From positions 124,001 through 188,000 of the forward strand of contig NIVC01000659.1 in assembly GCA_002269645.1 (NCBI GenBank): 64,000 bases of DNA, in the 5' to 3' direction. The DNA comes from Macrostomum lignano. Its lineage: Eukaryota. Within the stretch, counting starts at the first letter, position 1; each line of letters starts with the position of its first letter. The translations under genes were made by a program, and so were the position numbers. Of this stretch, positions 2,833 through 63,468 are shown piece by piece. Below the pieces are notes generated by a model that saw only the letters and a list, made by a program, of their open reading frames with translations, did not search any database and was not told the DNA's origin.

Positions 2833-2940
2833 TGTCTGATTGTTTAGCGCCAAGCAACACCTGAAAATCGTATTGCAAATTCAATTCTAAGATTATTCTG
2901 TTAATAAAGCGAGGCACCCACTCCCACTTGTCTACTACTA

Positions 2941-3670
2941 GTGTCTACTTCTTCCAAGTACTGTCTAATTCTTACAATTCTACTGTCAACTTCTCCCAAT
3001 CCTAGTATCTACTTCTCCCAAATCTACTGTTTACTTCTTCTCCCCATTCTACTATCTAATTCTTCCGATTCTGCATGCTTATCTACTTCTCCCAGTGTTA
3101 CTACAATATCTACTTCTTCCGATTCTGCATGCTTATCTACTTCTCCCAGTGTTACTACAATATCTACTTCTTCCAATTCTTCTATCTACTTCTCCCAATT
3201 CTACTATCTACTTCTCTCAATTCTACTATCTACTTCTCTCAATTCTACTATCTACTTCTCTCAATTCTACTATCTACTTCTCTCAATTCTACTATCTACT
3301 TCTCTCAATTCTACTATCTACTTCTCTCAATTCTACTATCTACTTCCCTCAATTCTACTATCTACTCCTCCCAATTCTACCATCAAGCTCTCCCAATTTT
3401 ACTATCTACTTCTCCCAATCCTACTATCTACTTCTCCCAATCCTACTATCTACTTCTCCCAATCCTACTATCTACTTCTCCCAATTCTACGGTCTACTCC
3501 CAATACTACTATACACTTCTCCCAATTCTAATATCCACTTCTCCCAATCCTACTATCTACTTCTCCCAATTTTACCATCCACCTCTCGCAATTCTACCAT
3601 CTACATCTCACAATTCTACTATCTACTTCTCTCAATTCTACTATCTACTTTTCCTAATTCTCCCATGTCA
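2941..3670. repeat. ~22-bp pyrimidine-rich minisatellite between ZDHHC and B4GALT7
   Basis: Repeated ctactatctacttctcccaatt; source of three overlapping low-complexity ORFs. Confidence 0.9.
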
Positions 3671-4228: not shown

Positions 4229-6167
4229 CTATTTATTAGCTTCGACATCGCTGTCCGGCTCACGCGGACCAGCCAGCAGGTTGTCACGGTCCTCGCCGAA
4301 CTCGTGACGCGTTGGGAACACCAGGCCGGAGCCCTGACTGTGGACGGCGGAACAGCGGCAGGTGGATGCACATGATCAAATACACATCTAGATACACATG
4401 ATCAAATACACATCTAGATGCACATGATCAAATACACATCTAGATACACATGATCAAATACACATCTAGATGCACATGATCAAATACACATCTAGATGCA
4501 CATGATCAAATACACATCTAGATACACATGATCAAATACACATCTAGATGCACATGATCAAATACACATCTAGATGCACATGATCAAATACACATCTAGA
4601 TGCACATGATCAAATACACATCTAGATGCACATGATCAAACACACATTTAGATACACATGATCTAATACACATCTAGATACACATGATCTAATACACATC
4701 TAGATACACATCTAGATACACATGATCTAATACACATCTAGATGCACATGATCAAATACACATCTAGATGCACATGATCAAATACACATCTAGATACACA
4801 TGATTAAATACAAATCTAGATGCACATGATTAAATACACATCTATATACACATGATCAAATACACATCTATATACACATGATCTAATACACATCTAGATA
4901 CACATGATCAAATACACATCTAGATGCACATGATCAAATGCACATCTAGATGCAGATGATCTTATACACATCTAGATAGAGACGATCTAATACACATCTA
5001 CATACAGATGATCTAATACACATCTAGATACAGGTAAACACAAAAGCAAAACTGCTCGCACTCACCTGGAGTACATCGGCAGCAGCCACATAAGCCGATC
5101 ATTGCCAAACACTTGCTTGAAATTATTCTTCAAGCCGGCGTGATAAGCCCGTTTATCCGGCCCGAATTCGAACATGGGAGCCCGGAAGCTCTCCAAAGTA
5201 GTGAGATTGAGCAATGTTAAGTACAGGTGGTAGCCGCCCAGGCCAACCAGAGCGATGCAGAACATCCAAGCCGCAAAGAACAGGAACAGGAGGTGGAACC
5301 GGACCGCGTGGACATTGCCGATGCCCGCCTGAAGTTAGCGGTTCAATTATTCTCAGGTGCATTTCAGGGGTCAGTTAAGGTCAAATCTCAGGTGCATTTC
5401 AGAGGTCAGTTAAGGTCAAATCTCAGGTGCATTTCAGGGATCAGTTAAGGTCAAATCTCAGGTGCATTTCAGGGATCAGTTAAGGTCAAATCTCAGGTGC
5501 ATTTCAGGGGTCATTTAAGGTCAAATCTCAGGTGCAGTTTAGGTGTCAGTTAAGGTCAAATCTCAGGTGCATTTCAGGGGTCAGTTAAGGTCAAATCTCA
5601 TGTGTAGTTTAGGGGTAAGTTAAGGTCAAATCTCTGGTGCAGTTTAAAGATCAGTTAAGGTCAAATCTCAGGTGCAGCTTAGGGATCAGTTAAGGTCAAA
5701 TCTCAGGTGCAGTTTAGTGATCAGTTAAGGTCAAATCTCAGGTGCAGTTTAGGGATCAGTTAAGGTCAAATCTCAGGTGCAGTTTAGGGATCAGTTAAGG
5801 TCAAATCTCAGGTGCTGTCATGGAAATCAATTCAAGGATGAGCAAAGGTGATTAAATTACACAAAAGAGCACTCACAGTCCAAAACTTGACAAAGTATTT
5901 AGCGGTAGTGCAGCCCACATAGAAGCAGTACAGAGAGCCGTACATGAGGAACTGGACAAAGAATTTATAGTTGTGAAAACCAACGCAGTTGTTCACCCAG
6001 GGACAGTGATGGTCCATCTTTAGTAGGCAGCTGCGGTGATTAAGGGATGCAGGATTTAGCGAATCAACGGCTGCTACTAAACTAAAGGAGTTCAATCAGT
6101 TGGTAGATTTCACCTGGTATCGATAGAAATAATTTGAGCATGTAGGTACGTAAAAATAGGGACAGAG

Positions 6168-21183: not shown

Positions 21184-22039
21184 TCATCAGCACATTGACC
21201 ACATACGTCCGCATCCACTGCACGGCCTTTACCCAGACGGAGCTTCTGGACCTTCAGAGGCTAGCTAGGTAGCTGGAGACCCTGTTGCGAACTTCTCCAG
21301 TTTCGCTGATCAAGTCTCGACATTGTGGGCAAGCCTCAACTGCTGGACATCCTTGACAGCTGGTCTCTCAAGCATTCCGTCATCCCCCCGACGCCGTCGG
21401 CAACCTTCAACATAGGGTGGAAAGTTTGACGGGTGAAAAAATGGCTCGGTATTCCTACTGTTGAAAGAGTCCTGTTAAAAGAAATCAAACACAGTGTGGC
21501 TGAAAGCCTTAATTCGCTTCCACTTACCTAGACAGTATTCGGCCAGTGTCTCTCAAGTTTGATTGCATATTTGGCATAGTGAAGTCTATGACTGATAAAA
21601 ATATGACCATTACCGCAATCGGGGACCCCGTACAGCAAACCGACGGCGTTCCGACGTCGATTACAAAAGTATTTGCTGTTACATTACATCGACAGATATC
21701 GACGTTATAAGTCAAAACCTGATAGTCGATGTAGCTGATGCAGGTACGACGTTAAAATTGCACGTATAAGCTACAGCGCTATACTGTCTTATCCTCTTGT
21801 CTCTGTTGTGTTGACATCTCAGGTGAAAACTTATTAAATCGGCCTCTATAAGATTGTTTCGCATTAGTCGTTTATAGTTTTACCGTCCCTAGCATTCAGA
21901 TGTCCACCACAATTGCTATTTAGAGGGCCATTGCTGCTTTCAGTTTTCGTGTGTAACTTGTCCCTATAGTTGCACTTGTACGCAGCCTGTGACTTTCCTG
22001 TATGAAAGACCCGATAGTTCTCCGTTTTCACAACCGTTT

Positions 22040-22850
22040 GATGTGCTCAGGAACAGCAGCACATTTGTGCATGATGTGCTCAGGAACAGCAGCACATTTG
22101 GTGCATGATGTGCTCAGGAACACCAGCACATTTGGTGCATGATGTGCTCAGGAACAGCAGCACATTGATGTGCTCAGGAACAGCAGCACATTTGGTGCAT
22201 GATGTGCTCAGGAACAGCAGCACATTGATGTGCTCAGGAACAGCAGCACATTTGGTGCATGATGTGCTCAGGAACAGCAGCACATTGATGTGCTCAGGAA
22301 CAGCAGCACATTTGGTGCATGATGTGCTCAGGAACAGCAGCACATTGATGTGCTCAGGAACAGCAGCACATTTGGTGCATGATGTGCTCAGGAACAGCAG
22401 CACATTGATGTGCTCAGGAACAGCAGCACATTTGGTGCATGATGTGCTCAGGAACAGCAGCACATTGATGTGCTCAGGAACAGCAGCACATTTGGTGCAT
22501 GATGTGCTCAGGAACAGCAGCACATTGATGTGCTCAGGAACAGCAGCACATTTGGTGCATGATGTGCTCAGGAACACCAGCACATTGATGTGCTCAGGAA
22601 CAGCAGCACATTTGGTGCATGATGTGCTCAGGAACACCAGCACATTGATGTGCTCAGGAACAGCAGCACATTTGGTGCATGATGTGCTCAGGAACACCAG
22701 CACATTGATGTGCTCAGGAACAGCAGCACATTTGGTGCATGTGCTCAGGACAGCAGCACATTTGGTGCATGTACTCAGGACAGCAGCACATTTGATGCAT
22801 GATGTGCTCAGGAACATGCAGCAGCACATTTGATGCATGATGTGCTCAGG
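22040..22850. repeat. 60-bp higher-order repeat (34-bp plus 26-bp subunits)
   Basis: Alternating gatgtgctcaggaacagcagcacatttggtgcat and gatgtgctcaggaacagcagcacatt. Confidence 0.93.
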
Positions 22851-23336
22851 AAAAGCATAAAAAACGAAGAATGATGAGATGCAAAAGAAAATCTCGCCTG
22901 CTACATATGTTTAGAGAGATACGAAGTAAAACGAATTTACACAAAGCAGCACAATGCAACCTTGACTGGGTCACCAGTTCCGATTGAAGAAAACATAGTA
23001 AAATACCAAACTGGAAAGTTTATTGAAACGGCGAGTGTATCGTAAAAAATGAATGATTTTTTTAGAATTTTTTCCAACTATTGAATAAATGGGCCAGAAG
23101 CGGCCCTCAAGCCGCTAAAGAAAAATGAGCTGCCATTGCATGCGCTGACTCCCGCCTACGCCGCGTTCACAAAGGCCCAGCGCGGTGTAATAAAGTCGGC
23201 CATAACCCCGAGCGATGTCCGAGCTAGGGCTTCCGGACTGTCCTGCATTTAAGTAAGTCAATTTCTAGAAAGTCAAGCTATCTTCGACTCTGCAGCTCTC
23301 TGAGACTCGACCAACCTCGCTAGACAAGCCGAAGCC

Positions 23337-23507
23337 ATGCTGAGATTTCTGATGCTCCTCGCCGCTCTGCTTCTGGTGGGCGCCACGCAACAGGCGGCTG
23401 CTGCTGATGAATGCAGCTGCCACCCGAATGGAGTCTGGTGCAATGGGGGAGATACGTGCAACGAAGGCTTCTGCAATAGAGATAGCCAGGGCGGCTGCTA
23501 TTTATGA
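23337..23507 (+). CDS. Small secreted six-cysteine peptide, 56 aa (MLRFLMLLAALLLVGATQQAAAADECSCHPNGVWCNGGDTCNEGFCNRDSQGGCYL)
   Basis: gccATG context, hydrophobic signal peptide ending in AAA, six Cys in a 33-aa mature part, AATAAA at 23552-23557, and a GTAAGT..CAG 43-nt candidate 5'UTR intron at 23253-23295. Confidence 0.78.
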   Translation: MLRFLMLLAALLLVGATQQAAAADECSCHPNGVWCNGGDTCNEGFCNRDSQGGCYL

Positions 23508-23636
23508 GGAACTTTGGAATGAATCGGAATCACTGAGAGCCTTTGAGTCTGAATAAATATGATAGCATTGCAGCTTCTGACCAGCTCTTTGAGCAATGCT
23601 TACATCAAATAAGCTGTGTTTGTACTGTCTTAATCA

Positions 23637-23714
23637 TTTCAGTCAGTCAGTCAGTCAGTCAGTCAGTCAGTCAGTCAGTCAGTCAGTCAGTCAGTCAGTC
23701 AGTCAGTCAGTCAG
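23637..23714. repeat. (AGTC)n microsatellite
   Basis: Directly visible. Confidence 0.95.
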
Positions 23715-24464
23715 TGTGTCTGAATGTAGAGGACGTACTTCTCTTTCTGATCGCAGTCGATAACAGCAGGCCAAGAGCTACTGCCGTCAGCCTCTAATGT
23801 ACAGGATGTCCTCTGCTCACCTTAGACGGACCTTGTTTTTCTGGGTTGCATTCTTTGCTAGTGTATATCTGTTATTGAGATTATAGATGTCTCAGCAATC
23901 CCTCCGCTTAATACCTCTTAGCATATGCACATGTACATGTATATGCTTCTTAGAGTTACATGTAGTTTGAATATGCATACACAAGCTGAGATGCTGAGAT
24001 GTCAAGGCTAATGAGGGCAATAGCTGAAATAAATGAAGGGGGTTGCTGAGATGCCTAAAGGCCAAACGTCAAAGGGAGATTCAGAGTCAGCCAAAGCTCG
24101 AAGGGAAAGCTGATATCAAGGGCGACTAAAGTAACATATGCATCTACTTAACTGGCTAATATCTTAAGCTGGATAGGTGGCTTTCATAGCCGATGATATT
24201 TGCTATAAAAACATCATTTTCCTTAAGAAACTAACGATAGTAACTGTACAAATCAAAAGTTGCATGTACGTATTGATTGAATAAAAGCTACATTGAATAA
24301 TATTTTAGGCAGTATAGTTTGAACAGTAACTCACTAATAATATCATAGACCGGTCAATCAAAAGAAATTTCTGTTAAAAAGTTGGCTCTAAATTTAACTA
24401 TAGCTACTGCATAAGTAGTAGATAACGCATATTTACAAAAACCAAAATCTTGAGTAGAAGGACG

Positions 24465-26572
24465 TTAACTGGAGCACGACCTGGTTGATTTGGATGCTCT
24501 GTCTTCCAGCAGCCTCACTCTGGCTTCCTCTGCCGCGGAAATTTCTGAACCAAAAAAGCTTCTAATTCTTTCAGCGCAGATCTTCAGGCGGGCACCGTCT
24601 GTGCAAAAATTGCAAAAAGCAAACAGCTCCTCATAGTCGGCATCCACATCAAGGTCGGCTTGCCAGCTGGCCATCTCTGACTCTCTATCAACGCTCTCTG
24701 CTCGCAAATGCAGGCTTAAACAGCGCCAGAAACTGTAAAAGTTGACGTAAGTGTGAGAAGCATTGCCCTGCTGGCCGAGGTGACAAATACAGCTGCTGGC
24801 GACTGTCTCTGGCAGAAAGTCCACCCCGATACTTCCATGGCTGTAAGCAAAGCAGAACTTCCAGGCCCAATCGCTTTCGCGAAGGATTATATAATCGTGC
24901 TCTTCAAAGTCGTAGCCTTCAAAATTGGCGTAATAACCGGATTCATTCAGTGTCTGAGCAGGGTCCCACTGTCGCTTTGTCTGATGACCCGCCAGCCGCT
25001 GTAGCGCCTGACAGGCGGACAACTGGTCGCCGAGTTTCAGATGCGCCAAGGCCTCCAGAACCTGGCGGGCGCACTTCATACAGGCCAAGTCATCGGCGCT
25101 TCTCAGCTTCTCATAGAAGTCGCTGGCCTGCTCAGGCTGCAGGTGTTGCAGTTCGCACAGTCGCCAGTAGACGAAGCCGTAGATGTCTGCAAAGTAGCTG
25201 AGCTTCAGTGTCTCCGGCCGAAACGATGGAACTCCCAACGGGAGCAGAGTGAATGGATAGAAGTAGAAGCTCGTGTCCTGTCCAAGCGGCCTCACGTGAC
25301 CAGCCAGGTGATGCTCAAATTCGGCCATGTTGAGCAGAACCCGCTTGATCAAAGTGAAAACAGTCAGTTTTGTTTCTGGCGATCCTACGATGGCGCTTTT
25401 GAAGAACAATGGCGCTCCTTCTAAGAAAAAGTGCGGCATGCAGACCTCGGGTTTGGGTTCATTGGTAGTGAGTTGCAGCATGAGCAGCAGGGACTCTCGA
25501 AACAGCGCGATTAGTCGTTCAGGCTTCCACTCATCCGGGTCATCCTGCTTCTTCTCGAGCATGAAAAACAGCAAAGTCTTGGCGTGGTAGGTCTTCAGAC
25601 CGGGCGCGTTCCAGGTTTTCGGGATGAGTCGCTTGAACAGGAACTTCAACAGGATAAACAGCTGGCCTTGCACAGTTGTCAGGCTGCGGAGGGCTTTCCT
25701 TTCCTGGAAGCTGAAGCTCACTCGAAGCTCGGTCGTTTTATCCGGCCTAGTTGCTCTGACCAGGTGCACGTTGCCCTCGCAATTGACGCTATCATCGCCT
25801 AGCAGAATGTTGATCCGGTGAGTATAGAATGAGCTGCAGCACATGTAGGCATAGCAGGTGTCCTGAGCTGGCCGGATTCCGCAGGGCGGAGCAGCGACTG
25901 CGGGCTGGGTGCCTGCAATGCAGCGGATGGCGTTTGATTAGCGGATTCAGTAACGATGCATGTGATGGATTTTATTTCTCCGACACTTCATATCTCCGAT
26001 ACTTCATATCTCCGACACTTCATATCTCCGACACTTCATATCTCCGACACGTCATATCTCCGACACTTCATATCTCCGACACGTCATATCTTCGTTAGGG
26101 TTAGGCTTACGGTTAAGCTTGTCGGAGGTATAAAGTTTCGAAAATATAAATAGGTGCTTTCGGAGATATGAAAGCGTCCCGTATAAAATAGACTGCAAAT
26201 ACCCCATTGATTCAGGTGACCCCCGGACTTCTACAAACCTGCTTGAACATCGATCAGACAGTGGCCTTCGACAACTTTTAATAGCAAGCCTCGTCCTCGT
26301 CTATCGGAGCACTGGCAGCCGAAGAACAGGTGAAACTTTTCCCCCTCCTGGATGACGGTCCAATCGATGTCGGAGTCCCTGGCGGTTCTTCCGGTCACCT
26401 GCACCAGGCTGTTGCCCCAGCCGTCGGAGAAGCTGCCAGTCATTTCCCGCATCTCTTCATAATAGGCCTTAACAGCGAGCTTTTGCAAGAACTCGGCCAT
26501 CTGGCACTGGAACTGAGCTCTCTCCCGGGTGAACCCAGCCTCCAGGAGTAGCTGGTGCAGGCGCAGGCTCAT
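24465..26572 (-). CDS. Mab-21/cGAS-like nucleotidyltransferase (cGLR). Exons 26572 (or 26597)-26239 and 25912-24465; at least 593 aa
   Basis: NTase motif GSFSDG...DSDIDW, SFSFQE, LFILLKFLFK, LKTYHAKTLLFFMLE, W, MPHFF (Mab-21 C-lobe). Phase-1 GT..AG intron 25913-26238 joins both ORFs in frame. Confidence 0.88.
25976..26090. repeat. 16-bp intronic minisatellite in the cGLR intron
   Basis: Repeated tctccgacacttcata, followed by ttagggttagg. Confidence 0.85.
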
Positions 26573-27198: not shown

Positions 27199-29239
27199 TT
27201 ATAAAACCCTTGTACGAGAAAAAGAGGGTGTAAGGCACAACCTTGACGAGTCTTCTTCCTGATCAGTCTGAGTTGAAAATCTCAGCAGCAGGTCGACAAT
27301 CACCTGATGCCCAGCGCTCCGAGCAATGTCCAGCGCCGATTGACTGGCACTTTTCTGTAGGTCTAGAACTGTCTCCTCGAGATCCGCGCCATTCTCCAGC
27401 AGGGCCTTCACGATGTCAGCGTAGCCTCTGCTGGCGGCACGCATCAGCAACGTCCAGCCGTCGGTTTCTACCGCTCGGCAGCTCAGGTCAACGAAATTCG
27501 CCACGAGCGACAGGCTCAGAGCGATGAAGCCGCCTGCTATGGCTGCATGGGCGATGCGCTGCGTCTGTTCTGGCGTCAAGTAGCTCAGTATTAACCGGAG
27601 CGAGCTGCACGCGTTGTTGGCCGCCTCGCCGTCCAGACAGCGTACCAGCCCGTCAGGACTTTGCTTGATTAGCTCTGCAATGTTGAGTCCATTTTCTAGC
27701 AGAACAGATACGACTAGCACAGAATTATTTCCAAGAGCGCAGGAGGATCCACTGAGAGTCCGTGATATTCAAATCGGCAGGACGGAATCCCAAACTAATC
27801 AAAAGTTGTACAACACGGGATTGTCCGTATCTGGCAGCGTCTATCAGACTGTGCCAGATGAGTTGTTTGCGGTCTGCTTCGGATTTAGAGTAAAAATCGA
27901 GCAGTTGCTTTGCAATACAGACATCTGTCAGATTAACGGCAGGGTTGGTGCCAAGCTGTTGATCATGAACTTCCTCCAACAGAACAGCGGCAACTTGAAA
28001 ATCGAGCGTTCTGAATGCGCTTTGAACGATCGCTGCTCGATCTGGAGGATCTAGATCATCTGGGCGGAAAATGCCTAAATTCAGCAACAGCCGAACAGCC
28101 CTCGGATCGCTGGATGTTGCCGCATGGCACAGTGCGCGTTCGATCAGTTGCTTTCGTTCGTCCACGGTCAGTGAGCAGTGATCAAATCGTTGGCAAATTT
28201 GATGAAAAATTTCTGTAGCGGTTGGATCTTTTGAAGAAGCCAGCTGGTACAGCACGTGACTTGTTGACTCGTCATTCAAAAAATAATCAACAACCGTAGG
28301 AAATTGCAGCAGTTCCCGCAACACAGAATAATTGCGCGCAGAAGTAGCTGCGTTGGCGCACTGATTCAGCAAGCAGCCGTTGCGCTCGTTACCGGAAATG
28401 TCTCTAATGGCCGACAGCAGTTTGTTAACAATAGGCCAAGATGAGCACTCGGCTGCCACGATGACTGCTTGCTTATTGGAACCAGTTTCTACCGGATCTG
28501 GATTTGCACCGGCAGTCAAAAGCAGGTCGATAATTTGTTCTGAGTCGGATTTAGCCGCTAATTGAATCGGTCTGCCATTCAATCTGGGAAGGCTCGGATC
28601 AGCTCCGTGTCCCAGAAGCAGCTCCACAGCTGCGGTCTGTCCTGAACCAGCAGCTGAGCACAAAGCGTTCGTGAGCGACTGGACGTCTAGAAAGCTCGGG
28701 TTAATGTCCGGATTGCAGACTAGCAAACGTACAATGTCCTCCTGTGTGGAAGCGCCGACTGTACGGTTGAGCGCGCAGTATCTTTCGTCTACTCGATTGT
28801 CCCCGGTGGCCCCCGAGCGAAACAGCAGTTCAACAATCTGTTTATGACCGAAGCTCGCGGCATAGTAGAGCGGTCGGCAGCCGAACCAGCGCTGCTCCGG
28901 CATGTCCGGATCTGCGCCAGCCTTTAGTAGCTCGGCTACTATGCTCAAATAGCCTCGGCGGGCCGCGAAGCTCAGTGGTGTAGCGTGGATGCGTGGATCC
29001 TCGTAGTTGGGATCGGCCGACCAGCGTACGAGAAGGTGCCGCACCAGATGCGCCTGGCCGCGAAAGCTGGCCTTTATCAGAGCCTTCTGAATGAGATCCG
29101 GCAGTCGAACGTTGGAGTCAATGCTGCCTGCTTGCAGCAGCAGCTGATCAATCCGTTCTATGCTACCAGCTGCGACTGCACGGTAGATTTCAGTTGCATC
29201 TGCTGTGGAAGCTATAGTTTGCGTTGTCAATATGTACAT
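27199..29239 (-). CDS. Multi-ankyrin-repeat protein (~670 aa) interrupted by one +1 frameshift near 27730-27745; may splice to the cGLR
   Basis: ANK units ATPLSFAARRGYLSIVAELLKAGADPD, RPLYYAASFGHKQIVELL, GWTLLMRAASRGYADIVKALLENGAD and SALDIARSAGHQVIVDLLL. ORF 29239-27725 continues in the +1 frame as CALGNNSVLVVSVLLENG. Confidence 0.85.
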
Positions 29240-29454
29240 GTAGACACGCCCGCACTTAATTATACGATTTTATGAGCTTAATACTTATTCGCAAATTTGT
29301 TTACTTTCCCGCCACATGGATGCCTTTTGAAATAAAAAGCTTCTGGTCTAAAACCTACATGAATGGAAGAGCACATGCAGTCAGTGATGGACGAAACTTT
29401 GAATACTGATGAAAAGTATGATTTCTTCTGAAACTCGACTGCTGTGATGTGATA

Positions 29455-30165
29455 CGGAGAGAGTGAGTGATGCGCAGAGAGTGAGTGATGAGCAGAGAGT
29501 GGGTGATGAGCAGAGAGTGAGTGATGCGCAGAGAGTGAGTGATGAGCAGAGAGTGAGTGATGAGCAGAGAGTGAGTGATGAGCAGAGAGTGAGTGATGAG
29601 CAGAGAGTGAGTGATGAGCAGAGAGTTAGTGATGAGCAGAGAGTGAGTGATGAGCAGAGAGTTAGTGATGAGCAGAGAGTGAGTGATGAGCAGAGAGTGA
29701 GTGATGAGCAGAGAGTGAGTGATGCAGAGAGTGAGTGATGAGCAGAGAGTGAGTGATGAGCAGAGAGTGAGTGATGAGCAGAGAGTGAGTGATGAGCAGA
29801 GAGTGAGTGATGCGCAGAGAGTGAGTGATGAGCAGAGAGTGAGTGATGAGCAGAGAGTGAGTGATGCAGAGAGTGAGTGATGAGCAGAGAGTGAGTGATG
29901 AGCAGAGAGTGAGTGATGAGCAGAGAGTGAGTGATGAGCAGAGAGTGAGTGATGAGCAGAGAGTGAGTGATGAGCAGAGAGTGAGTGATAAAGCAGAGAG
30001 TGAGTGATGCAGAGTGAGTGATGCAGAGAGTGAGTGATGAGCAGAGAGTGAGTGATGAGCAGAGAGTGAGTGATGAGCAGAGAGTGAGTGATGCAGAGGG
30101 AGTGATGCGGAGAGTGAGTGATAAGCAGTGAGTGAGTGATGCGGAGAGAGTGAGTGATGAGTGAC
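29455..30165. repeat. 18-bp minisatellite
   Basis: Repeated gagtgagtgatgagcaga. Confidence 0.95.
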
Positions 30166-30654
30166 AAGCTATCAGGAGTAATTTTATTTTTTTAATTCGC
30201 AATAACATGCTTAGAACGGAAGCATACAAAATTTTCAATTAAACAATGCACTCACCCATTTGCTGTGATACCTCAGTATGCGGCACTATTAATTAGCAGC
30301 TTTAACCAATATCAAATCAAAATAAGCTGAATTTTTAAGCGCTGTAGTTTATGACTGAACAAGAAGAATTAGAAAAAGAAGCAGCCTCATGCCTATCATA
30401 CAAAAAAATACAATTTCTTTCAACTAGGAACCATACAGTACTCTACAGTGTACAGATGAAATTTGATTGCAGCCAAAAAAGCGCGGGAAGGCCTTTTTGC
30501 TTCAATTTGAATTGTACAGCAATTCAAAGCTATTTTTAGAACGACCGATGAACGATATTAATTGTACAGCTTCCTTTTCCTCGTACATGGAAAGATGGAG
30601 AGAAAGTACTTGGCACAGTAAGAGACAAACAAAAAGAAATCCTTTAGGTAGCGG

Positions 30655-31275
30655 CTACTCACTAATGACCAGGTGATAATCAGGGAGTGGTTACTCACTA
30701 ATGACCAGGTGATAATCAGGGAGCGGTTACTCACTAATGACCAGGTGATAATCAGGGAGCGGTTATTCACTAATGACCAGGTGATAATTAGGGAACGGTT
30801 ACTTACTAATGACCAGGTGATAATTAGGGAGCGGTTACTTACTAATGACCAGGTGATAATCAGGGAGCGGTTACTCACTAATGACCAGGTGATAATTAGG
30901 GAGCGGTTACTTACTAATGACCAGGTGATAATCAGGGAGCGGTTACTTACTAATGACCAGGTGATAATCAGGGAGCGGTTATTCACTAATGACCAGGTGA
31001 TAATCAGGGAGCGGCTACTCACTAATGACCAGGTGATAATCAGGGAGCGGTTACTCACTAATGACCAGGTGATAATCAGGGAGCGGTTACTCACTAATGA
31101 CCAGGTGATAATCAGGGAGCGGTTACTCACTAATGACCAGGTGATAATTAGGTAGCGGTTACTCACTAATGACCAGGTGATAATCAGGGAGCGGTTACTC
31201 ACTAATGACCAGGTAATAATTAGGGAGCGGTTACTCACTAATGACCAGGTGATAATCAGGAAGCGGTTACTCATT
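30655..31275. repeat. 36-bp minisatellite
   Basis: Repeated ctcactaatgaccaggtgataatcagggagcggtta. Confidence 0.95.
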
Positions 31276-31719
31276 TAAGAAGTGAGGCGACAATTAAGGA
31301 GTCAAAATAAAATTGAAGCTATTATTTAATGAACTTTAAGACATCATTAAGTTGATAAATTTGACAAAAGACTAAAATATTTGCTAATTCATATCACACG
31401 AAGTTTCGAATGAATTGCATGATCTCTACCAGTACAGAAGACAATGGATTCTTTGCAAAACGCGTTTGTATTTTTGCTGTCTTTGGCTAAAGAGTTAACT
31501 CAAAATTAGCTACTTTTTACTAGGTTTTTATTAGGGAAGATAGCGAATAGCTCGTACAACTGATGACGTAATGATGTGCAAGATTCCCGACAAATTGTAA
31601 TGAAAGAAGTCAACATTCTAAATCGTTATGTAGAAAGATTCATAATTTACAAATTAGTGCTTTAAGTAGTCGCATTCTGTATTAATGTGGGACTTTGGGC
31701 ACTAGCTCGTAGAGTGAGT

Positions 31720-33030
31720 AATAGTGAGCAATGAAACCTTGTGAATGAGTGATCAATAACAACACAGCCTTGTGAATGAATGAATGGCAACAAGGCAATC
31801 TTGTGAATGAGTGAAAAGCAACAAGGCAATCCTGTGAATGAGTGAATAACAACAACGCAATCTTGTGAATGAGTGAAAAGCAACAAGGCAATCCTGTGAA
31901 TGAGTGAAAAGCAACAAGGCAATCCTGTGAATGAGTGAAAAGCAACAACGCAATCGTGTGAATGAGTGAATAGCAACAATGCAATCTTGTGAATGAGAGA
32001 ATAGCAACAACGCGATCTTGTGAATGAGAGAATAGCAAAAACGCAATCTTGTGAATGAGTGAATAGCAACAACGCAATATTGTGAATGAGTGAATGGCAA
32101 CAACGCAATATTGTGAATGAGTGAAAAGCAACAACGCAATCGTGTGAATGAGTGAATAGCAACAATGCAATCTTGTGAATGAGAGAATAGCAACAACGCA
32201 ATATTGTGAATGAGTGAATGGCAACAACGCAATATTGTGAATGAGTGAAAAGCAACAACGCAATCGTGTGAATGAGTGAATAGCAACAATGCAATCTTGT
32301 GAATGAGAGAATAGCAACAACGCGATCTTGTGAATGAGAGAATAGCAAAAACGCAATCTTGTGAATGAGTGAATAGCAACAACGCAATATTGTGAATGAG
32401 TGAATGGCAACAACGCAATATTGTGAATGAGTGAAAAGCAACAACGCAATCGTGTGAATGAGTGAATAGCAACAATGCAATCTTGTGAATGAGAGAATAG
32501 CAACAACGCAATCTTGTGAATGAGTGAATAGCAACAACGCAATCTTGTGAATAAGAGAATAGCAAAAACGCAATCTTTTGAATGAGTGAATAGCAACAAG
32601 GCAATCTTGTGAATGAGTGAATAGCAACAACGCAATCTTGTGAATGTTGAATAGCAACAACGCAATATTGTGAATGAGTGAATGGCAACAAGGCAATATT
32701 GTGAATGAGTGAATAGCAACAACGCAATCTTGTGAATGAGTGAATAGCAACAACGCAATATTGTGAATGAGTGAATGGCAACAATGCAATCTTGTGAATG
32801 AGAGAATAGCAAAAACGCAATCTTGTGAATGAGTGAATAGCAACAATACAATATTGTGAATGAGTGAATAGCAACAACGCAATATTGTGAATGAGTGAAT
32901 GGCAACAACGCAATATTGTGAATGAGTGAATGGCAACAACGCAATATTGTGAATGAGTGAATGGCAACAATGCAGTCTTTTGTCTTTTGAATGAGTTAAA
33001 AGAAAAATTCAGTTTTGTGAATGAGTGAAT
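31720..33030. repeat. ~31-bp minisatellite
   Basis: Repeated ttgtgaatgagtgaatagcaacaacgcaatc. Confidence 0.95.
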
Positions 33031-56900: not shown

Positions 56901-59900
56901 TATACTAAGAACGCTACCAGACTAATACATAAGACTGCTCAGGCCATATACTAAGAACGCTACCAGACTAATACATAAGACCGCTCAGGCCATATACTAA
57001 GAACGCTACCAGACTAATACATAAGACGCTACCAGACCATATACTAAGAACGCTACCAGAATATACTAAAAACACTACCAGAATATACTAAGAACGCTAC
57101 CCAGAAGATATATGAAATTCTAAGAAACAGTTAGAAATACTAAAGGCAGAATTTAGTATCAGCAGTATAAATTCTAGACAGAGGAATAACGCCTGTCACA
57201 GCTGGTGGCAAATCGGTGGGATTAAAATTGATAAAGTAAGAGGTGAAAGGCCTGTCACAGCTGGTGGCAATAGTGGGATAGTTGGAGGACAGAAGTAAGC
57301 CCTACGACAAATCTAGCAACAGACAATCTGACAACAGTCAAAGTGGCTACAGATAATCTGGCAACAATTTATTTTGTAGATTTTACAGATTTTAGGACTG
57401 CATCTAATGCTTTATAATTGTATATAGTGCTCTTGTTCTCATCTAAGATGCGTCAATCCTAATGTAAGTTACTGTAGTAATTAAATTAAATTAAATTAAT
57501 TTTAATTTTAATTTTAATTAAATAAAATGTTATTTTCTGAGTTGTTTATTACAAAATATAAATACTTTAATGTGTAGATGTCCTATAAATTAGACCTCAT
57601 TTATATTTATATATTCATTGCTGCATGTGAACTATACAAATATAAAGCTTTTAAGCAACTAATTGTCAAGATTCTATTTCCTTGTAACAATACTCAAGAA
57701 TTGAAAAACCCAAAAATTGCTGGTTACATTGCAACTTCCATGCATTTGCTATGCTAAAAATGCATAGGAGAATGCAACATATAGTTGTAACCATTCCATT
57801 TAATATAACAAATTCAGAGTAGAGAAATGTTTGCAGAATTCAATATAAATAAAAAGAATAATAGTACATAGCTCTAATAATCTATATAAATGCTAAATCA
57901 TTGAGTTTTTAGCTTTTATTCATATTACACCAATTGTTGCCAGATTGACTATTACCAAATTGATTGTAGCCGGATTGTCTGTTTCCAGATTGTCTTGTTG
58001 CCACATTGACTGGATACCATTATTTGCATGGTACCTTGTAAATATTGCTGTTTCTTTTATAATATTCCTTTGATATTACTTTGCACAATTAATAGTTAAT
58101 AGCTAAATAAACACATATAAATCATGCCTTATTCATTTATTCTATTTAGTTTTAACTCATTATTAGAGTATAAGATAAGTATTTATCAGGTAATTTTTTT
58201 AGCTACTTTATAGATAGTGCTAGTACTATTTACAATTATAAACCATTTTGGTAATAGCCACTTTGATAATTGCTATTTCAGTAACAAAGTAGACTTATAA
58301 TTTTCAGTAGTATATATAATAATTGACTTTAATACCTATGAGATTAATAATTAACATGTCAAATATTTTATCATTAAATATAGTTTAATTTTCTAGTTTA
58401 ACTATATTATAATTTATTTAAACTGGCACAGATCAGTAAAAAAGAAAATAGATGCATTCTAAGATCAGAATATAGTTTTACTATATAACTATAGTTAAAA
58501 CTATATAACTATAGTTTATTGTTTGAAAAACATGTCACAAAAGGGAATATTGAAACTTGTAATAATTGTAATTGTACTAAAAAACACAATTTGTATCTTT
58601 TACATAGATTTAGCAAATCTGAAAATTGAAATAGATCAAATAATACCTATATACCAACAATTTGAACACTATGTTTCTGCATAGTCAGCATAGATATAAA
58701 CTTCACAAAGTGTGGGCCCTAAGAGAATATATCTCAATGATTTCTTTCTAGTCTATTTCACAAAAGTTCATTAGCATTTCATTCTTCAAAGCATATCAAA
58801 TTATATACTGTTAATTCTCCTTTGTTACTAAGTGGCTATTACTAAAGTAGACTATTATCCTATTTATATGGTATTGGGCAAATAACACTGGCAATATTTA
58901 AATGGTATTGTGCTAGTAGCAAGTAACAAAAAATATAATAATATAGTTTTAGTTATAGTGGTTACATTAATGCCTTCCCTGAAAACCCTGCGCCCATTGT
59001 TCAGCAGAAACGAGCAGCTGGCAGCGGCGACAAGACGGCCTCTGGGCCCGCCAGATCTGGGCTGAATCCCTGGCCCGAGTACATTGCCGAGCGGGAGAAG
59101 GTCTGGTCCAGATGCAAAGCGGCTTACGAAGAATTTGTTGCTAAGCAGCCGCGCGAATCAATTCGAATCACGCTGCCGGATGGCACCGTGAAGGAGGGCG
59201 TCAGCTGGGAGACCTCGCCGATGCAGATTGCCAAAAGCATCAGCCAGGGCCTTGCGGAGTCCGCTGTCATCGCCAAGGTCAACGGCACCCTGTGGGATCT
59301 GGACCGGCCGCTGGAGGGCGACTGCAATCTGGAGGTGCTCAAATTCGACTCCGACGATGGGCGCTACGTATTCTGGCACTCGTCAGCTCATATTCTCGGT
59401 GAGGGAGGGTATTGTATTGGCGAATATCCATTCATTGCTCCTCAGTTGCTGGGCTAGCTTCCCAGATCCTCATTTGCTGGGCTAGCTTCCCAGATCCTCA
59501 GTTGCTGAGCCAGCCTCCCAGATCCTCAGTTGCCGGGCCAGCCTCCCAGATCCTCAGTTGCTGGGCCAGCTTCCCAGATCCTCAGTTGCTGAGCCAGCCT
59601 CCCAGATCCCCAGTTGCTGAGCCAGCCTCCCAGATCCTCAGTTGCTGAGCCAGCCTCCCAGATCCTCAGTTGCTGGGCCAGCCTCCCAGAGTGTCAGTTG
59701 CTGGGCCAGCCTCCCAGATCCTCAGTTGCTGGGCCAGCCTCCCAGAGTGTCAGTTGCTGGGCCAGCCTCCCAGTTCCTCAGTTGCTGGGCCAGCCTCCCA
59801 GATCCTTAGTTGCTGGGCTAGCGTCCCGGAGTGTCAGTTGCTGGGCCACCAGCCTCCCAGATCCTCAGTTTCTGGGCCAGCCTCCCAGATCCTCAGTTGC

Positions 59901-62900
59901 TGGGCCAGCCTCCCAGAGTGTCAGTTGCTGGGCCAGCCTCCCAGTTCCTCAGTTGCGGGGCCAGCCTCCCAGATCCTCAGTTGCTGGGTCAGCCTTTCAG
60001 ATCCTCAGTTGCTGAGCCAGCCTCCCAGATCCTCAGTTGCTGAGCCAGCCTCCCAGATCCTCAGTTGCTGAGCCAGCCTCCCAGATCCTCAGTTGCTGGG
60101 CCAGCCTCCCAGAGTGTCAGTTGCTGGGCCAGCCTCCCAGTTCCTCAGTTGCTGGGCCAGCCTTCCAGATCCTCAGTTTCTGGGCCAGCCTCCCAGATCC
60201 TTAGTTGCTGGGCCAGCCTCCCAGATCTTCAGTTGCTGGGTTAGCGTCCCGGAGTGTCAGTTGCTGGGCCACCAGCCTCCCAGATCCTCAGTTTCTGGGC
60301 CAGCCTCCCAGAGTGTCAGTTGCTGGGCCAGCCTCCCAGATCCTCAGTTGCTGGGCCAGCCTCCCAGAGTGTCAGTTGCTGGGCCAGCCTCCCAGATCCT
60401 CAGTTGCGGGGCCAGCCTCCCAGACCCTCAGTTGCTGGGCCAGCCTCCCAGATCCTCAGTTGCGGGGCCAGCCTCCCAGACCCTCAGTTGCTGGGCCAGC
60501 CTCCCAGATCCTCAGTTGCGGGGCCAGCCTCCCAGACCCTCAGTTGCTGGGCCAGCCTCCCAGATCCTCAGTTGCGGGTCCAGCCTCCCAGATCCTCAGT
60601 TGCGGGGCCAGCCTCCCATATCCTTAGCTGCGGGCTAATAGTTTAGTTTTTAGCCAAATTGCAGATAAAAGTTTAAGCGATTCAGCCTCCCCGTGACTGC
60701 CGAATTCAAACTCCATCGCAGGCGAGGCCATGGAGCGCACATTCGGCGGCTGCCTCTGCTACGGCCCGCCAGTAGATGACGGCTTCTATTACGACATGCA
60801 CATTGCCGAGGACACCGTGTCGCAGGAGGACTTCCCGCCGTTAGACAATCTGTGCAAAAAGATTGTCAAAGAGAAGCAGCCGTTCGAACGATTGGAGATG
60901 AGCAAAGCGGACCTGCTGGAGATGTTCAAATATAACGAGTTTAAGCAGCGGATTATCAATACTAAAATTGACACGCCTACAACTACGGTGTACAAGTGCG
61001 GCCCTTTGATTGACCTGTGCCGCGGCCCGCACGTGCCCCACACTGGCCGAATCAAAGCCATGATGGTCACTAGGAACTCGTCTGCCTATTGGGAGGGCAA
61101 GGTGAGGGAGTTATTAGTGCAGTATTCGTGCCCCAGCTACATTAGAGTTATTAGTGCATGGTAGTTTCCTAGTACAATCTCACCTGTGAGATTTTTTGTA
61201 GCTGCAGTCTCAGGGTGAGTTTTATTGTAGGAGATGCAATCTCAGGGTGAGATTTTTCGTGGGAGATACAATCTCAGGGTAAGATTATTGTAGGAGATGC
61301 AATCTCAGGGTGAGATTTATTGTAGGAGATGCAATCTCAGGGTGAGATTTATTGTAGGAGATGCAATCTCAGGGTGAGATTTATTGTAGGAGATGCAATC
61401 TCAGGGTGAGATTATTGTATTAGAAGCAATCTCATGGTGAGATTTTTAGAGCAGATTATTATTCAGTAATAATCTCACTAACAGGCGGATGCGGAGAGTT
61501 TGCAACGCGTCTACGGAATCTCTTTCCCGGACCCGAAGCAGCTGAAAGAATGGAAGACGATCCAGGAGGAAGCTGCTAAACGCGATCACAGGTATTGGAT
61601 AACTAATTAGCTGACGAGGCTAAACATGCTATAGTTACTCTCGCCTTTTACCCGTGTACTGTCTAATATTGCAGGCGTCTTGGCAAAGAGCAGCGTCTAT
61701 TCTTCTTTCACGAGCTTAGTCCCGGCTCTTGCTTCTTTTATCCGCGCGGCGCCCACATTTACAACACTCTCGTTGCTTTCATTCGCGAAGAGTATTGGAA
61801 GCGCGGCTTCAGCGAAGTGATCACGCCAAATATTTACAATGCCAAGCTATGGGAGACGTCCGGCCACTGGCAGCATTATTCCGACAATATGTTCAAGATC
61901 GAAATCGAGAAGGAGACTTACGGATTGAAGCCCATGAACTGTCCCGGCCACTGCGTCATGTTTGGCAGCGAACTGCGGAGCTATAAGGAGCTGCCTATTC
62001 GGTGTGTTTGCTGAGATCTTCTTTTAATAGAAAAATTGCTTTTGCTGGATTGCCCAGCTACCCCAATAGAATCGCCCCAGCTACCCTAAAAGAATCAACC
62101 CATAGACAATCGCCCTGAACTACCCATAGACAATCGCCCTGAACTACCCATAGACAATCGCCCTGAACTACCCATAGACAATCGCCCTGAACTACCCATA
62201 GACAATCGCCCTGAACTACCCATAGACAATCGCCCTGAACTACCCATAGACAATCGCCTTGAACTACCCATAGACAATCGCCCTGAACTACTTACTCATA
62301 GACAGTCGCCCTGAACTACCCATAGACAGTCGCCCTGAACTACCCATAGACAATCGCCCTGAACTACCCATAGACAATCGCCTTGAACTACCCATAGACA
62401 ATCGCCCTGAACTACTTACTCATAGACAGTCGCCCTGAACTACCCATAGACAGTCGCCCTGAACTACCCATAGACAATGGCCCTGAACTACCCTGTCTAC
62501 GCATAGACAATCGCCCTGAACTATCCATAGATAATCGCCCTGAACTATCCATAGATAATCGCCCTGAACTACCCAAAGACAATCGCCCTGAACTACCCAC
62601 AGACAGTCGCCCTGAACTACCCATAGACAATCGCCCTGAACTACCCATAGACAATCGCTCTGAACTACCCATGGACAATCGCCCTGAACTACCCATACGC
62701 TCGTAGACAATCGCCCTGAACTACCCATGGACAATCGCCCTGAACTACCCATGGACAATCGCCCTGAACTACCCATAGACAATCGCCCTGAACTACCCAT
62801 GGACAATCGCCCTGAACTACCCATAGACAATCGCCCTGAACTACCCATAGACAATCGCCCTGAACTACCCATGGACAATCGCCCTGAACTACCCATGGAC

Positions 62901-63468
62901 AATCGCCCTGAAACCTATGCATCACCTAGAATATTTTCCCTGAAGTTTTGATCGGCCCTCAAATCATAAATAATCTTTCCCCTCCCTTTCCCTTGATCAC
63001 GTGATCCCGTTCAGCTACGCGGACTTTGGCGTCCTGCACCGCAACGAGCTGTCCGGCGCACTCAGCGGCCTCACCCGGGTGCGCCGCTTTCAACAGGACG
63101 ATGCGCACATCTTCTGCCGCGAAGACCAGATCCGCGACGAGATTGGCGGCTGTCTGGACTTCCTACGACACGTCTACGGAATATTCGGCTTCACCTTTAA
63201 ACTGGAGCTGAGCACCCGGCCTGAGCAGTATCTTGGCGAAGTTGAACTCTGGGATCGGGCTGAGAAACAGCTGTCTGAATCGCTAAACGCATCCGGTCTG
63301 GAATGGAAGCTCAACCCGGGCGATGGCGCTTTCTATGGGCCCAAGATTGATATTGGCATTCAGGACGCGTTGAAACGCTGGCACCAGTGCGCCACAATAC
63401 AGCTGGACTTCCAGCTGCCGCAGCGGTTCGATCTGCACTATCAGTCAGAGTCTGATGATACTGACGCT
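53966..63468 (+). CDS. TARS1: Cytosolic threonyl-tRNA synthetase, 3'-incomplete. Exons 53966-53974 (tentative), 59005/59008-59398, 60722-61101, 61485-61591, 61675-62001, 63015-63468
   Basis: [11 protein letters not shown] domain ([33 protein letters not shown]), [10 protein letters not shown]|[18 protein letters not shown]|[79 protein letters not shown]. All junctions are phase-compatible. Confidence 0.96.
56823..57310 (+). mobile_element. LTR (TGTGAC...GTCACA, 56823-57200) with duplicated LTR-end plus PBS units
   Basis: cctgtcaca-gc-tggtggcaaatcggtgggatt (57200) repeated as cctgtcaca-gc-tggtggcaatagtgggata (57259). Confidence 0.65.
57310..58018. mobile_element. Decayed element with inverted subterminal arrays
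   Basis: gacaatctggcaacaa-like array on the left, ttgttgccagattg-like array on the right, ending ggatacc. Confidence 0.5.
59440..60640. repeat. 28-bp intronic minisatellite (TARS)
   Basis: Repeated cagatcctcagttgctgggccagcctcc. Confidence 0.95.
61180..61450. repeat. ~32-bp intronic minisatellite with an internal hairpin (TARS)
   Basis: Repeated gtaggagatgcaatctcagggtgagatttatt; contains aatctca-ggg-tgagatt. Confidence 0.88.
62095..62915. repeat. 24-bp intronic minisatellite (TARS)
   Basis: Repeated ccatagacaatcgccctgaactac. Confidence 0.95.

Follow-up and report, generated by a model that had tools for sequence, protein, structure and literature searches.

When a reading frame of only 56 amino acids carries the marks of a secreted, cysteine-rich peptide, one has to ask whether it is a gene at all, whether it belongs to a family already on record and what its product might do. 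Here we ask this of the ATG reading frame MLRFLMLLAALLLVGATQQAAAADECSCHPNGVWCNGGDTCNEGFCNRDSQGGCYL, located at 23337..23507 (+) in the window, by which we mean the whole stretch of 64,000 nucleotides that was analysed. The window itself is eukaryotic and rich in mini- and microsatellites.

A gene for a putatively secreted six-cysteine peptide and its relatives

An earlier note, made from the letters alone, had described a 56-aa frame with a signal peptide, a 33-aa remainder with the cysteine spacing C-x-C-x6-C-x5-C-x4-C-x7-C, and an AATAAA signal further downstream, and all of these are present as described. Among the 167 ATG frames of 40-120 aa in the window, this is the only one that pairs a signal-like N-terminus with at least six later cysteines, and none of 100 local shuffles yielded such a frame. 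The 56-aa frame thus exceeds chance. It represents a real gene, coding for a secreted peptide with six cysteines. It is indeed absent from the ORF track, because it falls below the usual 60-aa cutoff; to call it "hidden", as the note did, was an overstatement, since a copy with 84% identity (PAA93506.1) is present in GenBank.

A search of 5.8 billion proteins recovered two relatives, both from Macrostomum lignano. The first (P0001; hypothetical protein BOX15_Mlig013770g1, PAA93506.1, UniRef A0A267H5E7) is also 56 aa long, with a phmmer E-value of 1.6e-24, and the second (P0002; BOX15_Mlig020725g1) is 58-60% identical (phmmer E = 8e-6) and occurs as near-identical copies g1-g3 (PAA58764.1, PAA49576.1 and PAA47085.1). 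When 1.84 billion cluster representatives were searched exhaustively with a HMMER profile, nothing came up but these two M. lignano clusters (E = 7e-33 and 6e-27). None of 320 pattern matches in JGI metagenome contigs could be confirmed, and within the window neither tblastn nor a scan for the cysteine pattern found a second paralogue. The search for paralogues and orthologues that had been proposed as a check did reveal in-frame conservation in four other loci, namely that of P0001 (L001) and those of P0002-P0004 (L002-L004). As far as these searches reach, the gene family is known only from Macrostomum flatworms, with relatives found only in M. lignano; since no more than five loci are available, and these come from one genome or two, this lineage restriction may partly reflect poor sampling of macrostomids.

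The family falls into two subfamilies, one Mlig013770-like (window and L001) and the other Mlig020725-like (L002-L004). The window peptide resembles the other members over its full length, including the signal MLRFLMLL..ATQQ, and the columns that are invariant across the family are C26, S27, C28, C35, C46 and Q51-Y55, i.e. the CSC start and the QGGCY tail. The position of the fourth cysteine shifts between the subfamilies while the number of cysteines is unchanged. Mlig020725 shares with the window peptide the signal, the CSC start, the six cysteines, the QGGCY tail and the same gene unit; in contrast, its mature part is only 42% identical, is 31 aa long, is near-neutral (pI 6.2) and has the spacing C-x-C-x6-C-x7-C-x2-C-x5-C.

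As for secretion, the N-terminus of the window peptide has an arginine at position 3 (R3), a 12-residue hydrophobic core and an end of small residues of the AxA type, and in an AlphaFold model of the full precursor residues 3-22 form one helix. Published SignalP 4.1 predictions are positive for both groups of M. lignano homologues, for which ProP gave no propeptide site (PMC10414684 S5). The SignalP check that the earlier note had asked for is therefore answered favourably by these homologues, and we infer from the sequence and from the published predictions that the window peptide is secreted. Cleavage would occur either after A23, by alignment with the paralogue (AQA|D), or after A22, as in the published SignalP 4.1 prediction for the 84% copy, so that the mature window peptide would have 33 or 34 residues; the mature homologues predicted in the same source are ADECSCHQDG...CYL (34 aa) and DSCSCEDNK...CYD (31 aa) (PMC10414684 S5). 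The mature part follows directly on the signal, and there is no dibasic site. Modelled alone, it is all-beta and has no helix, at moderate confidence (AlphaFold pLDDT 71), and the peptide probably has three disulfides and a small all-beta fold.

Regarding expression, the gene models of M. lignano were built from transcript assemblies only (StringTie, TACO and a de novo transcriptome, with RPKM of at least 0.5; PMC5730564). Since models exist for Mlig013770.g1 and Mlig020725.g1-3, the homologues are transcribed, and by extension the window copy is likely to be expressed as well. The exact protein of the window has no record in the annotated assemblies searched, the gene IDs and peptide strings were not mentioned in full-text searches of the literature, and searches of the supplements of PMC5816591, PMC12896417, PMC7336406 and PMC5946080 found no localisation or regulation of family members.

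Layout and origin of the gene unit

The window carries the gene unit common to the family, which consists of a TATA-like ATTTAAG box, a single coding exon, AATAAA and a downstream (TCAG)n repeat, the last being found behind the gene in all family loci (Table 1). In an alignment of three loci (window, L001 and L002) all indels within the coding sequence are multiples of three, and the context of the start codon, the position of the stop, the AATAAA and the upstream blocks are conserved. In the region of the 5'UTR, the window and L001 differ at two of 84 nt. One of the upstream blocks, GGCTTCCGGACT, contains what we take to be an ETS-like TTCCGG core, and its role is presumed from that motif.

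Table 1. Positions of the parts of the gene unit in the window
Feature	Position	Strand	Basis or remark
Duplicated gene unit, promoter to microsatellite	23177..23715	+	Sole L002 blastn match in the window, 71% identity; three-locus alignment
Upstream block CGGTG..ATAAA.TCGGCCAT	23183..23203	+	Invariant columns in window, L001 and L002; putative promoter-proximal role
Conserved block GGCTTCCGGACT	23228..23239	+	Invariant in the alignment of window, L001 and L002
TATA-like box ATTTAAGTAAGT	23247..23258	+	Kept as ATTTAAGAAAGT in L002; precedes the inferred mRNA start by ~15-25 nt
Inferred 5'UTR (~65 nt)	23272..23336	+	Begins at the position that corresponds to the first base of the gene models in L002-L004
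Signal peptide coding part MLRFLMLLAALLLVGATQQAAAA	23337..23405	+	Paralogue alignment; published SignalP 4.1 on the 84% copy
Mature peptide DECSCHPNGVWCNGGDTCNEGFCNRDSQGGCYL	23406..23504	+	33 aa, 3.5 kDa, pI 4.1, six Cys
Stop codon TGA	23505..23507	+	Same position in all copies
Poly(A) signal AATAAA	23552..23557	+	45 nt past the stop; invariant in window, L001 and L002
(TCAG)19 microsatellite	23639..23715	+	Detected by TRF; found here in every locus; marks where the duplicated unit ends (3')

The earlier note had also proposed a 43-nt intron in the 5'UTR. The string on which this was based exists, with GTAAGT starting at 23253 and CAG ending at 23295, but its reading as an intron is unsupported, as neither splice site survives in the paralogue, which has GA for the donor GT and AA for the acceptor AG. 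Moreover, the transcript-derived model of the paralogue crosses the acceptor region without interruption and begins downstream of the "donor". In the window, GTAAGT (23253-23258) lies inside the conserved TATA-like box ATTTAAG(T/A)AAGT, ~15-20 nt upstream of the inferred start of the mRNA, and the "acceptor" CTGCAG lies inside the inferred 5'UTR, in a region that the paralogue has as colinear exon sequence. In GenBank, the CDS models of P0002-P0004 are 5'-partial, starting 84-87 nt upstream of the ATG, and the genome has no in-frame stop before that point; this suggests that the mRNAs start there, which corresponds to ~23270-23275 in the window. The window gene is therefore best read as intronless, with a 5'UTR of ~65 nt whose start is placed by homology.

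Two other readings of the region were discarded. A gene on the minus strand is ruled out, as the antisense frames contain no long ATG ORF and it is the plus strand that carries the poly(A) signal as well as the published gene models. As for a non-coding RNA, Rfam gave no family and only sub-threshold CsrB noise in a minisatellite. A conserved inverted repeat behind the AATAAA (23564-23571 / 23593-23600) is unremarkable, with a folding z of -1.2 and no folding in the paralogue.

The two subfamilies differ in how much of their surroundings they share with the window. L001 is collinear with positions 21644-26430, i.e. over more than 4 kb, at 89-94% DNA identity, and has the same promoter, UTRs and poly(A) signal as the window copy. 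This collinear stretch also includes, on the opposite strand, an intact Mab-21-like ORF of 459 aa, which has no exact protein record and whose best annotated relatives are only 40% identical. L002-L004, in contrast, share with the window only 23177-23715 and lie in a different neighbourhood, of F-box/LRR and protein kinase genes. Since the sharing is limited to this segment, the family has spread as a unit of ~540 bp comprising promoter, gene and (TCAG)n.

The genome of M. lignano is neopolyploid, with ~3 copies of most loci, and its subgenomes differ by ~2% in SNPs (PMC10733133). L002-L004 differ from one another by 1-2% overall, in line with this figure. The divergence between the window and L001 (~5% in the flanks, with a pS of 0.074 in the neighbouring ORF) exceeds ~2%, and so the window represents either the orthologue of L001 in a sister species or a paralogous block of greater age.

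Evolution of signal, scaffold and loops

The peptides of the window and L001 have the same cysteine spacing and differ at nine residues, eight of which are in the mature loops. With the window given first, these are HPNGVW/HQDGIR between Cys II and Cys III, NGGDT/IGGEK between Cys III and Cys IV, and R/K at position 48 (R48K). At the nucleotide level the mature parts differ at 10 of 99 nt (eight non-synonymous changes and two synonymous ones), and all cysteine codons, the CNEGFC segment and the SQGGCYL tail are untouched. The part coding for the signal has a single difference in 69 nt. Taken together, promoter, 5'UTR, signal and 3'UTR differ at 7/356 positions, compared with 10/99 in the mature part (Fisher p = 0.0008). 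The downstream background (95/1899) provides a local reference, relative to which the mature part is more diverged (p = 0.036) and the regulatory, UTR and signal parts are more conserved (p = 0.008). The latter shows continuing constraint on expression and secretion.

The 459-aa ORF next to the gene served as an internal yardstick, with pS 0.074 and pN 0.017 between the window and L001 (ratio 0.23). The mature part of the peptide has a pN of 0.097, which is 5.7 times that of the neighbouring ORF (p = 0.0003), and compared with the local pS (p = 0.48) it is at about the local neutral rate. A similar partition is seen across the deeper split between the subfamilies: the signal part has pS 0.14 and pN 0.09 (89% nucleotide identity to L002), the UTRs and promoter are 24-33% diverged, and in the mature part pS and pN are both 0.45 (55% nucleotide identity to L002). 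What is kept across that split are the six cysteines, the frame, the position of the stop and QGGCY. Judged by these sequence comparisons, the scaffold is constrained and the loops change at about the neutral rate. Such a loop pattern, with pN/pS near 1 in one pair, may reflect either diversifying selection or relaxed constraint; the Mlig020725 copies g1-g3 are unsuitable as a test of selection, because they differ by only 1-2% overall.

Possible roles, prior record and comparison with known systems

We consider it rather probable (roughly 70%) that the window gene encodes a lineage-restricted extracellular effector peptide, expressed from the compact intronless unit 23177-23715, in which the scaffold is fixed and the loops evolve fast. 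Under such a reading, a transcription unit with a TATA-like box, a 5'UTR of ~65 nt, a CDS of 171 nt and AATAAA would give rise to a 56-aa precursor, which would enter the secretory pathway and lose a signal peptide of 22-23 aa, leaving an acidic peptide of ~3.5 kDa. Its rigid disulfide scaffold would present the variable loops, mainly those between Cys II and III and between Cys III and IV, outside the cell, where they may engage a target that itself changes, whether the setting is defence or some other contact between organisms; the peptide would not act as a cationic membrane-lytic agent. Its target and biological role are a matter of speculation. [quoted passage not shown]

Among more specific roles, one may consider an antimicrobial peptide of innate immunity, which would be released onto the epidermis or into the gut and kill microbes directly. 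Families of antimicrobial peptides (AMPs) often have mature regions that evolve fast, and the window peptide is, like them, secreted, small and cysteine-rich. However, its charge at pH 7 is -4.2 (pI 4.1) and that of the L001 peptide -3.2, the opposite of typical cationic AMPs; with -0.3 in L002-L004, none of these peptides has a net positive charge at neutral pH. Both subfamilies do appear as AMP-like in the S5 File of a published survey, with 10/11 predictors positive (PMC10414684). In the same file Kunitz protease inhibitors also score 90.9% and the authors warn of a bias towards cysteine-rich peptides, so that the score says little about function. Flatworms lack the canonical AMP families (PMC10414684), and lineage-specific cysteine-rich peptides would be expected as their replacements. 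The antimicrobial option that the earlier note had entertained is thus weakened by the acidic charge and retains the predictor scores of the homologues in its favour; we see it as possible but doubtful.

Alternatively, the gene could encode a reproductive peptide, for instance a component of the seminal fluid, a product of the prostate glands or a mating pheromone, and sexual selection or sexual conflict would then be the cause of its fast evolution. Three studies describe the reproduction-related genes of Macrostomum as fast-evolving and often lineage-specific (PMC7336406, PMC8662610, PMC10092323), putative seminal-fluid proteins of M. lignano are known from an in-situ screen (PMC5977470), and a mature part that combines a fixed scaffold with roughly neutral change elsewhere would fit such a role. 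On the other hand, the gene IDs were not found in the supplementary tables of positional and reproduction-related RNA-seq (PMC7336406, 3 Mb) or in lists of germline and neoblast genes (PMC5816591), which counts only weakly against it, as the files searched may be incomplete and short transcripts are often filtered out. Overall, we find a reproductive role plausible but rather unlikely.

For a gene evolving in this manner one may also consider an explanation other than function, namely that the family is real while the copy in the window, being redundant, drifts neutrally under relaxed constraint or early pseudogenisation and has no function of its own. A neopolyploid genome with ~3 copies of most loci (PMC10733133) provides the setting for it, and a pN/pS of 0.8-1.25, a mature pN not different from the local synonymous rate and the lack of a record of the exact protein in the annotated assemblies searched would all be in agreement. 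Nevertheless, the ORF, start, stop, six cysteines, QGGCY tail, promoter blocks and AATAAA are all intact, the same pattern of fast loops on a fixed scaffold is seen across the much older split of the subfamilies, and the conservation of promoter, UTRs and signal above the surrounding DNA shows continuing constraint. Redundancy of the window copy is therefore improbable. An endogenous signalling peptide, i.e. a hormone- or neuropeptide-like ligand of a receptor of the worm itself, is very improbable. A small secreted peptide with a rigid disulfide scaffold would suit it, as in some invertebrate hormones, but there are no dibasic sites, no ProP site and no C-terminal amidation signal, and a ligand of a conserved receptor would not typically have loops that change at the neutral rate or occur in a single genus. 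Of these readings we prefer that of the lineage-restricted effector with a fixed scaffold and fast loops.

The survey mentioned above, by Irvine et al. 2023 (PLoS Pathog, PMC10414684), ran SignalP 4.1 and ProP on all WormBase ParaSite proteins of at most 150 aa. Both subfamilies were listed and discarded there, Mlig013770g1 as "Ungrouped AMP-LP no. 524", having no sequelog, and Mlig020725g1-3 as "fAMP-LP group 67, same genome" (PMC10414684 S5). The pipeline did not link the two, and no peptide with more than two cysteines was assayed (PMC10414684). That the subfamilies were dropped as "ungrouped" or "single genome" is due to their kinship residing in the signal peptide and the cysteine frame rather than in the mature sequence, and the case shows what large peptide-mining pipelines can overlook. 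The suggestion of an undescribed family thus stands in part: no known family matches, yet both subfamilies had already been tabulated as AMP-like peptides in the 2023 supplement. With the window gene, a Macrostomum-specific family that had been annotated and flagged before gains a further copy, which is either an orthologue or a homoeologue.

Why such a copy deserves attention is that in free-living flatworms the canonical invertebrate AMP families are absent and the repertoire of secreted effectors is almost uncharacterised. The role of the peptide is directly testable, since RNAi and transgenesis are available in M. lignano and the promoter unit is only ~160 bp. Otherwise it is one among many orphan cysteine-rich secreted peptides, and no general concept is changed.

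Comparison with known families began with a Pfam scan at E <= 10, which gave only a meaningless match of Defensin_propep to the signal peptide (E = 0.6). Neither phmmer nor the profile search matched any PDB entry, and Foldseek of the mature model (pLDDT 71) against the PDB had a best E-value of ~9, with no toxin, defensin or knottin among the matches. Across Pfam, PDB sequences, folds and the exhaustive profile search there was hence no clear match to a well-known family; it is such a match that the earlier note had said would remove the novelty.

The likeness to sea-anemone toxins of the beta-defensin fold, which the start of the peptide had suggested to the earlier note, is not supported, as there was no HMM match, no terminal CC and no structural match to the model of moderate confidence. 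The type 1/2 sodium-channel and BDS-like toxins do share with the window peptide an N-terminal CxC, six cysteines, small size and secretion; the window peptide, however, ends in ...C-x7-C-Y-L, has no CC anywhere and differs in the lengths of its loops. A CS-alpha-beta defensin was likewise rejected, given that there is no CxxxC, that the CxC is N-terminal instead of C-terminal and that the model has no helix. Flatworms have been reported to be without CS-alpha-beta peptides (PMC10414684).

A knottin was not found among the Foldseek or PDB profile matches. As a lead only, the CxCxPNGxxC of the window peptide resembles EETI-II (...CVCGPNGFCG), a knottin trypsin inhibitor of the squash type. Squash inhibitors and the window peptide have in common six cysteines, ~30 residues and the local motif C-x-C-x-P-N-G-x-(x)-C, which in EETI-II forms a beta-hairpin. 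Unlike in those inhibitors, where it is C-terminal, the motif is N-terminal in the window peptide, and other family members have QDG or EDNK in place of PNG. Homology between the plant squash inhibitors and a flatworm peptide is implausible.

A parallel of another kind concerns the mode of evolution. In conopeptide superfamilies and in the precursors of frog-skin peptides, the signal is highly conserved, synonymous sites included, and the mature region is hypervariable around invariant cysteines. Macrostomum, by comparison, is a diatom-feeding free-living flatworm for which we know of no venom apparatus, and the window peptide differs from conopeptides in having neither a propeptide nor a proprotein-convertase site, and no match in sequence or cysteine framework. 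What the window peptide has in common with conopeptides and frog-skin peptides is not homology but a mode of evolution, in which a conserved signal and fixed cysteines frame a variable mature part.

Open reading frames among minisatellite arrays

Minisatellite arrays are very dense throughout the window (42 tandem-repeat rows from TRF with a score of at least 200) and account for its local extremes of GC skew. In the six-frame list, the majority of long ORFs fall inside such arrays and for that reason are probably artefacts of the repeats, not genes. One ORF matches glycosyltransferase family 7 (beta-1,4-galactosyltransferase-like, E = 9e-16) in that family's N-terminal region and is probably a single exon of a bigger gene; a 34-bp tandem array overlaps it in part.

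On the minus strand, an ORF with a Mab-21 HhH/H2TH-like C-terminal domain and two ankyrin-repeat ORFs are jointly similar to proteins of 650-800 aa that combine ankyrin repeats and Mab-21, an expanded family in Macrostomum lignano, with a best identity of only 40%. The Mab-21-like ORF has an intact counterpart (96% amino-acid identity, pN/pS 0.23) in L001, the collinear M. lignano locus that carries a close copy of the peptide gene, and is under purifying selection there; no gene model is on record for it in L001.

Features of the window
Feature	Position	Strand	Details
Glycosyltransferase family 7-like ORF	1972-2853	-
34-bp tandem array	1978-2303
Minisatellite	22106-22823		60-bp period, 11.9 copies, 96% match
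Inverted repeat, perfect, 8 bp	23564-23571 / 23593-23600		AGCATTGC / GCAATGCT
(TCAG)n microsatellite	23639-23715
Mab-21-like ORF	24465-25844	-	459 aa
Ankyrin-repeat ORF	27199-27720	-
Ankyrin-repeat ORF	27725-29239	-
Example minisatellite arrays	2938-3661, 4365-5032, 29458-30161, 30646-31273, 31738-32979, 59439-60635, 62098-62912
Example long ORFs in arrays	29355-30238, 31662-32970, 60093-60638

Repeats on either side of the peptide gene

The peptide gene is preceded, at a distance of about 500 bp, by a 60-bp minisatellite, which gives rise to long but spurious ORFs of 252 and 242 aa on both strands. The equivalent place in L001 holds just ~1.3 copies of the unit, whereas the window holds 11.9, so that array length is strongly unlike between the two loci.

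Shortly 3' of the poly(A) signal there is a perfect inverted repeat, and the stretch that holds it is well conserved among paralogues. Its predicted fold is no improvement on shuffled sequences (z = -1.2) and no fold is predicted for its counterpart in L002, a paralogous locus of the second subfamily; a conserved cleavage or downstream element is therefore more likely than a hairpin.

Immediately 3' of the gene comes a (TCAG)n microsatellite, found at the same relative position in L001 and in all three loci of the second subfamily (L002-L004). Every member of the peptide family thus carries a directly adjoining (TCAG)n, including the paralogues that have only a ~540-bp unit in common with the window; the microsatellite therefore either was duplicated together with the gene or marks the boundary of the duplication.
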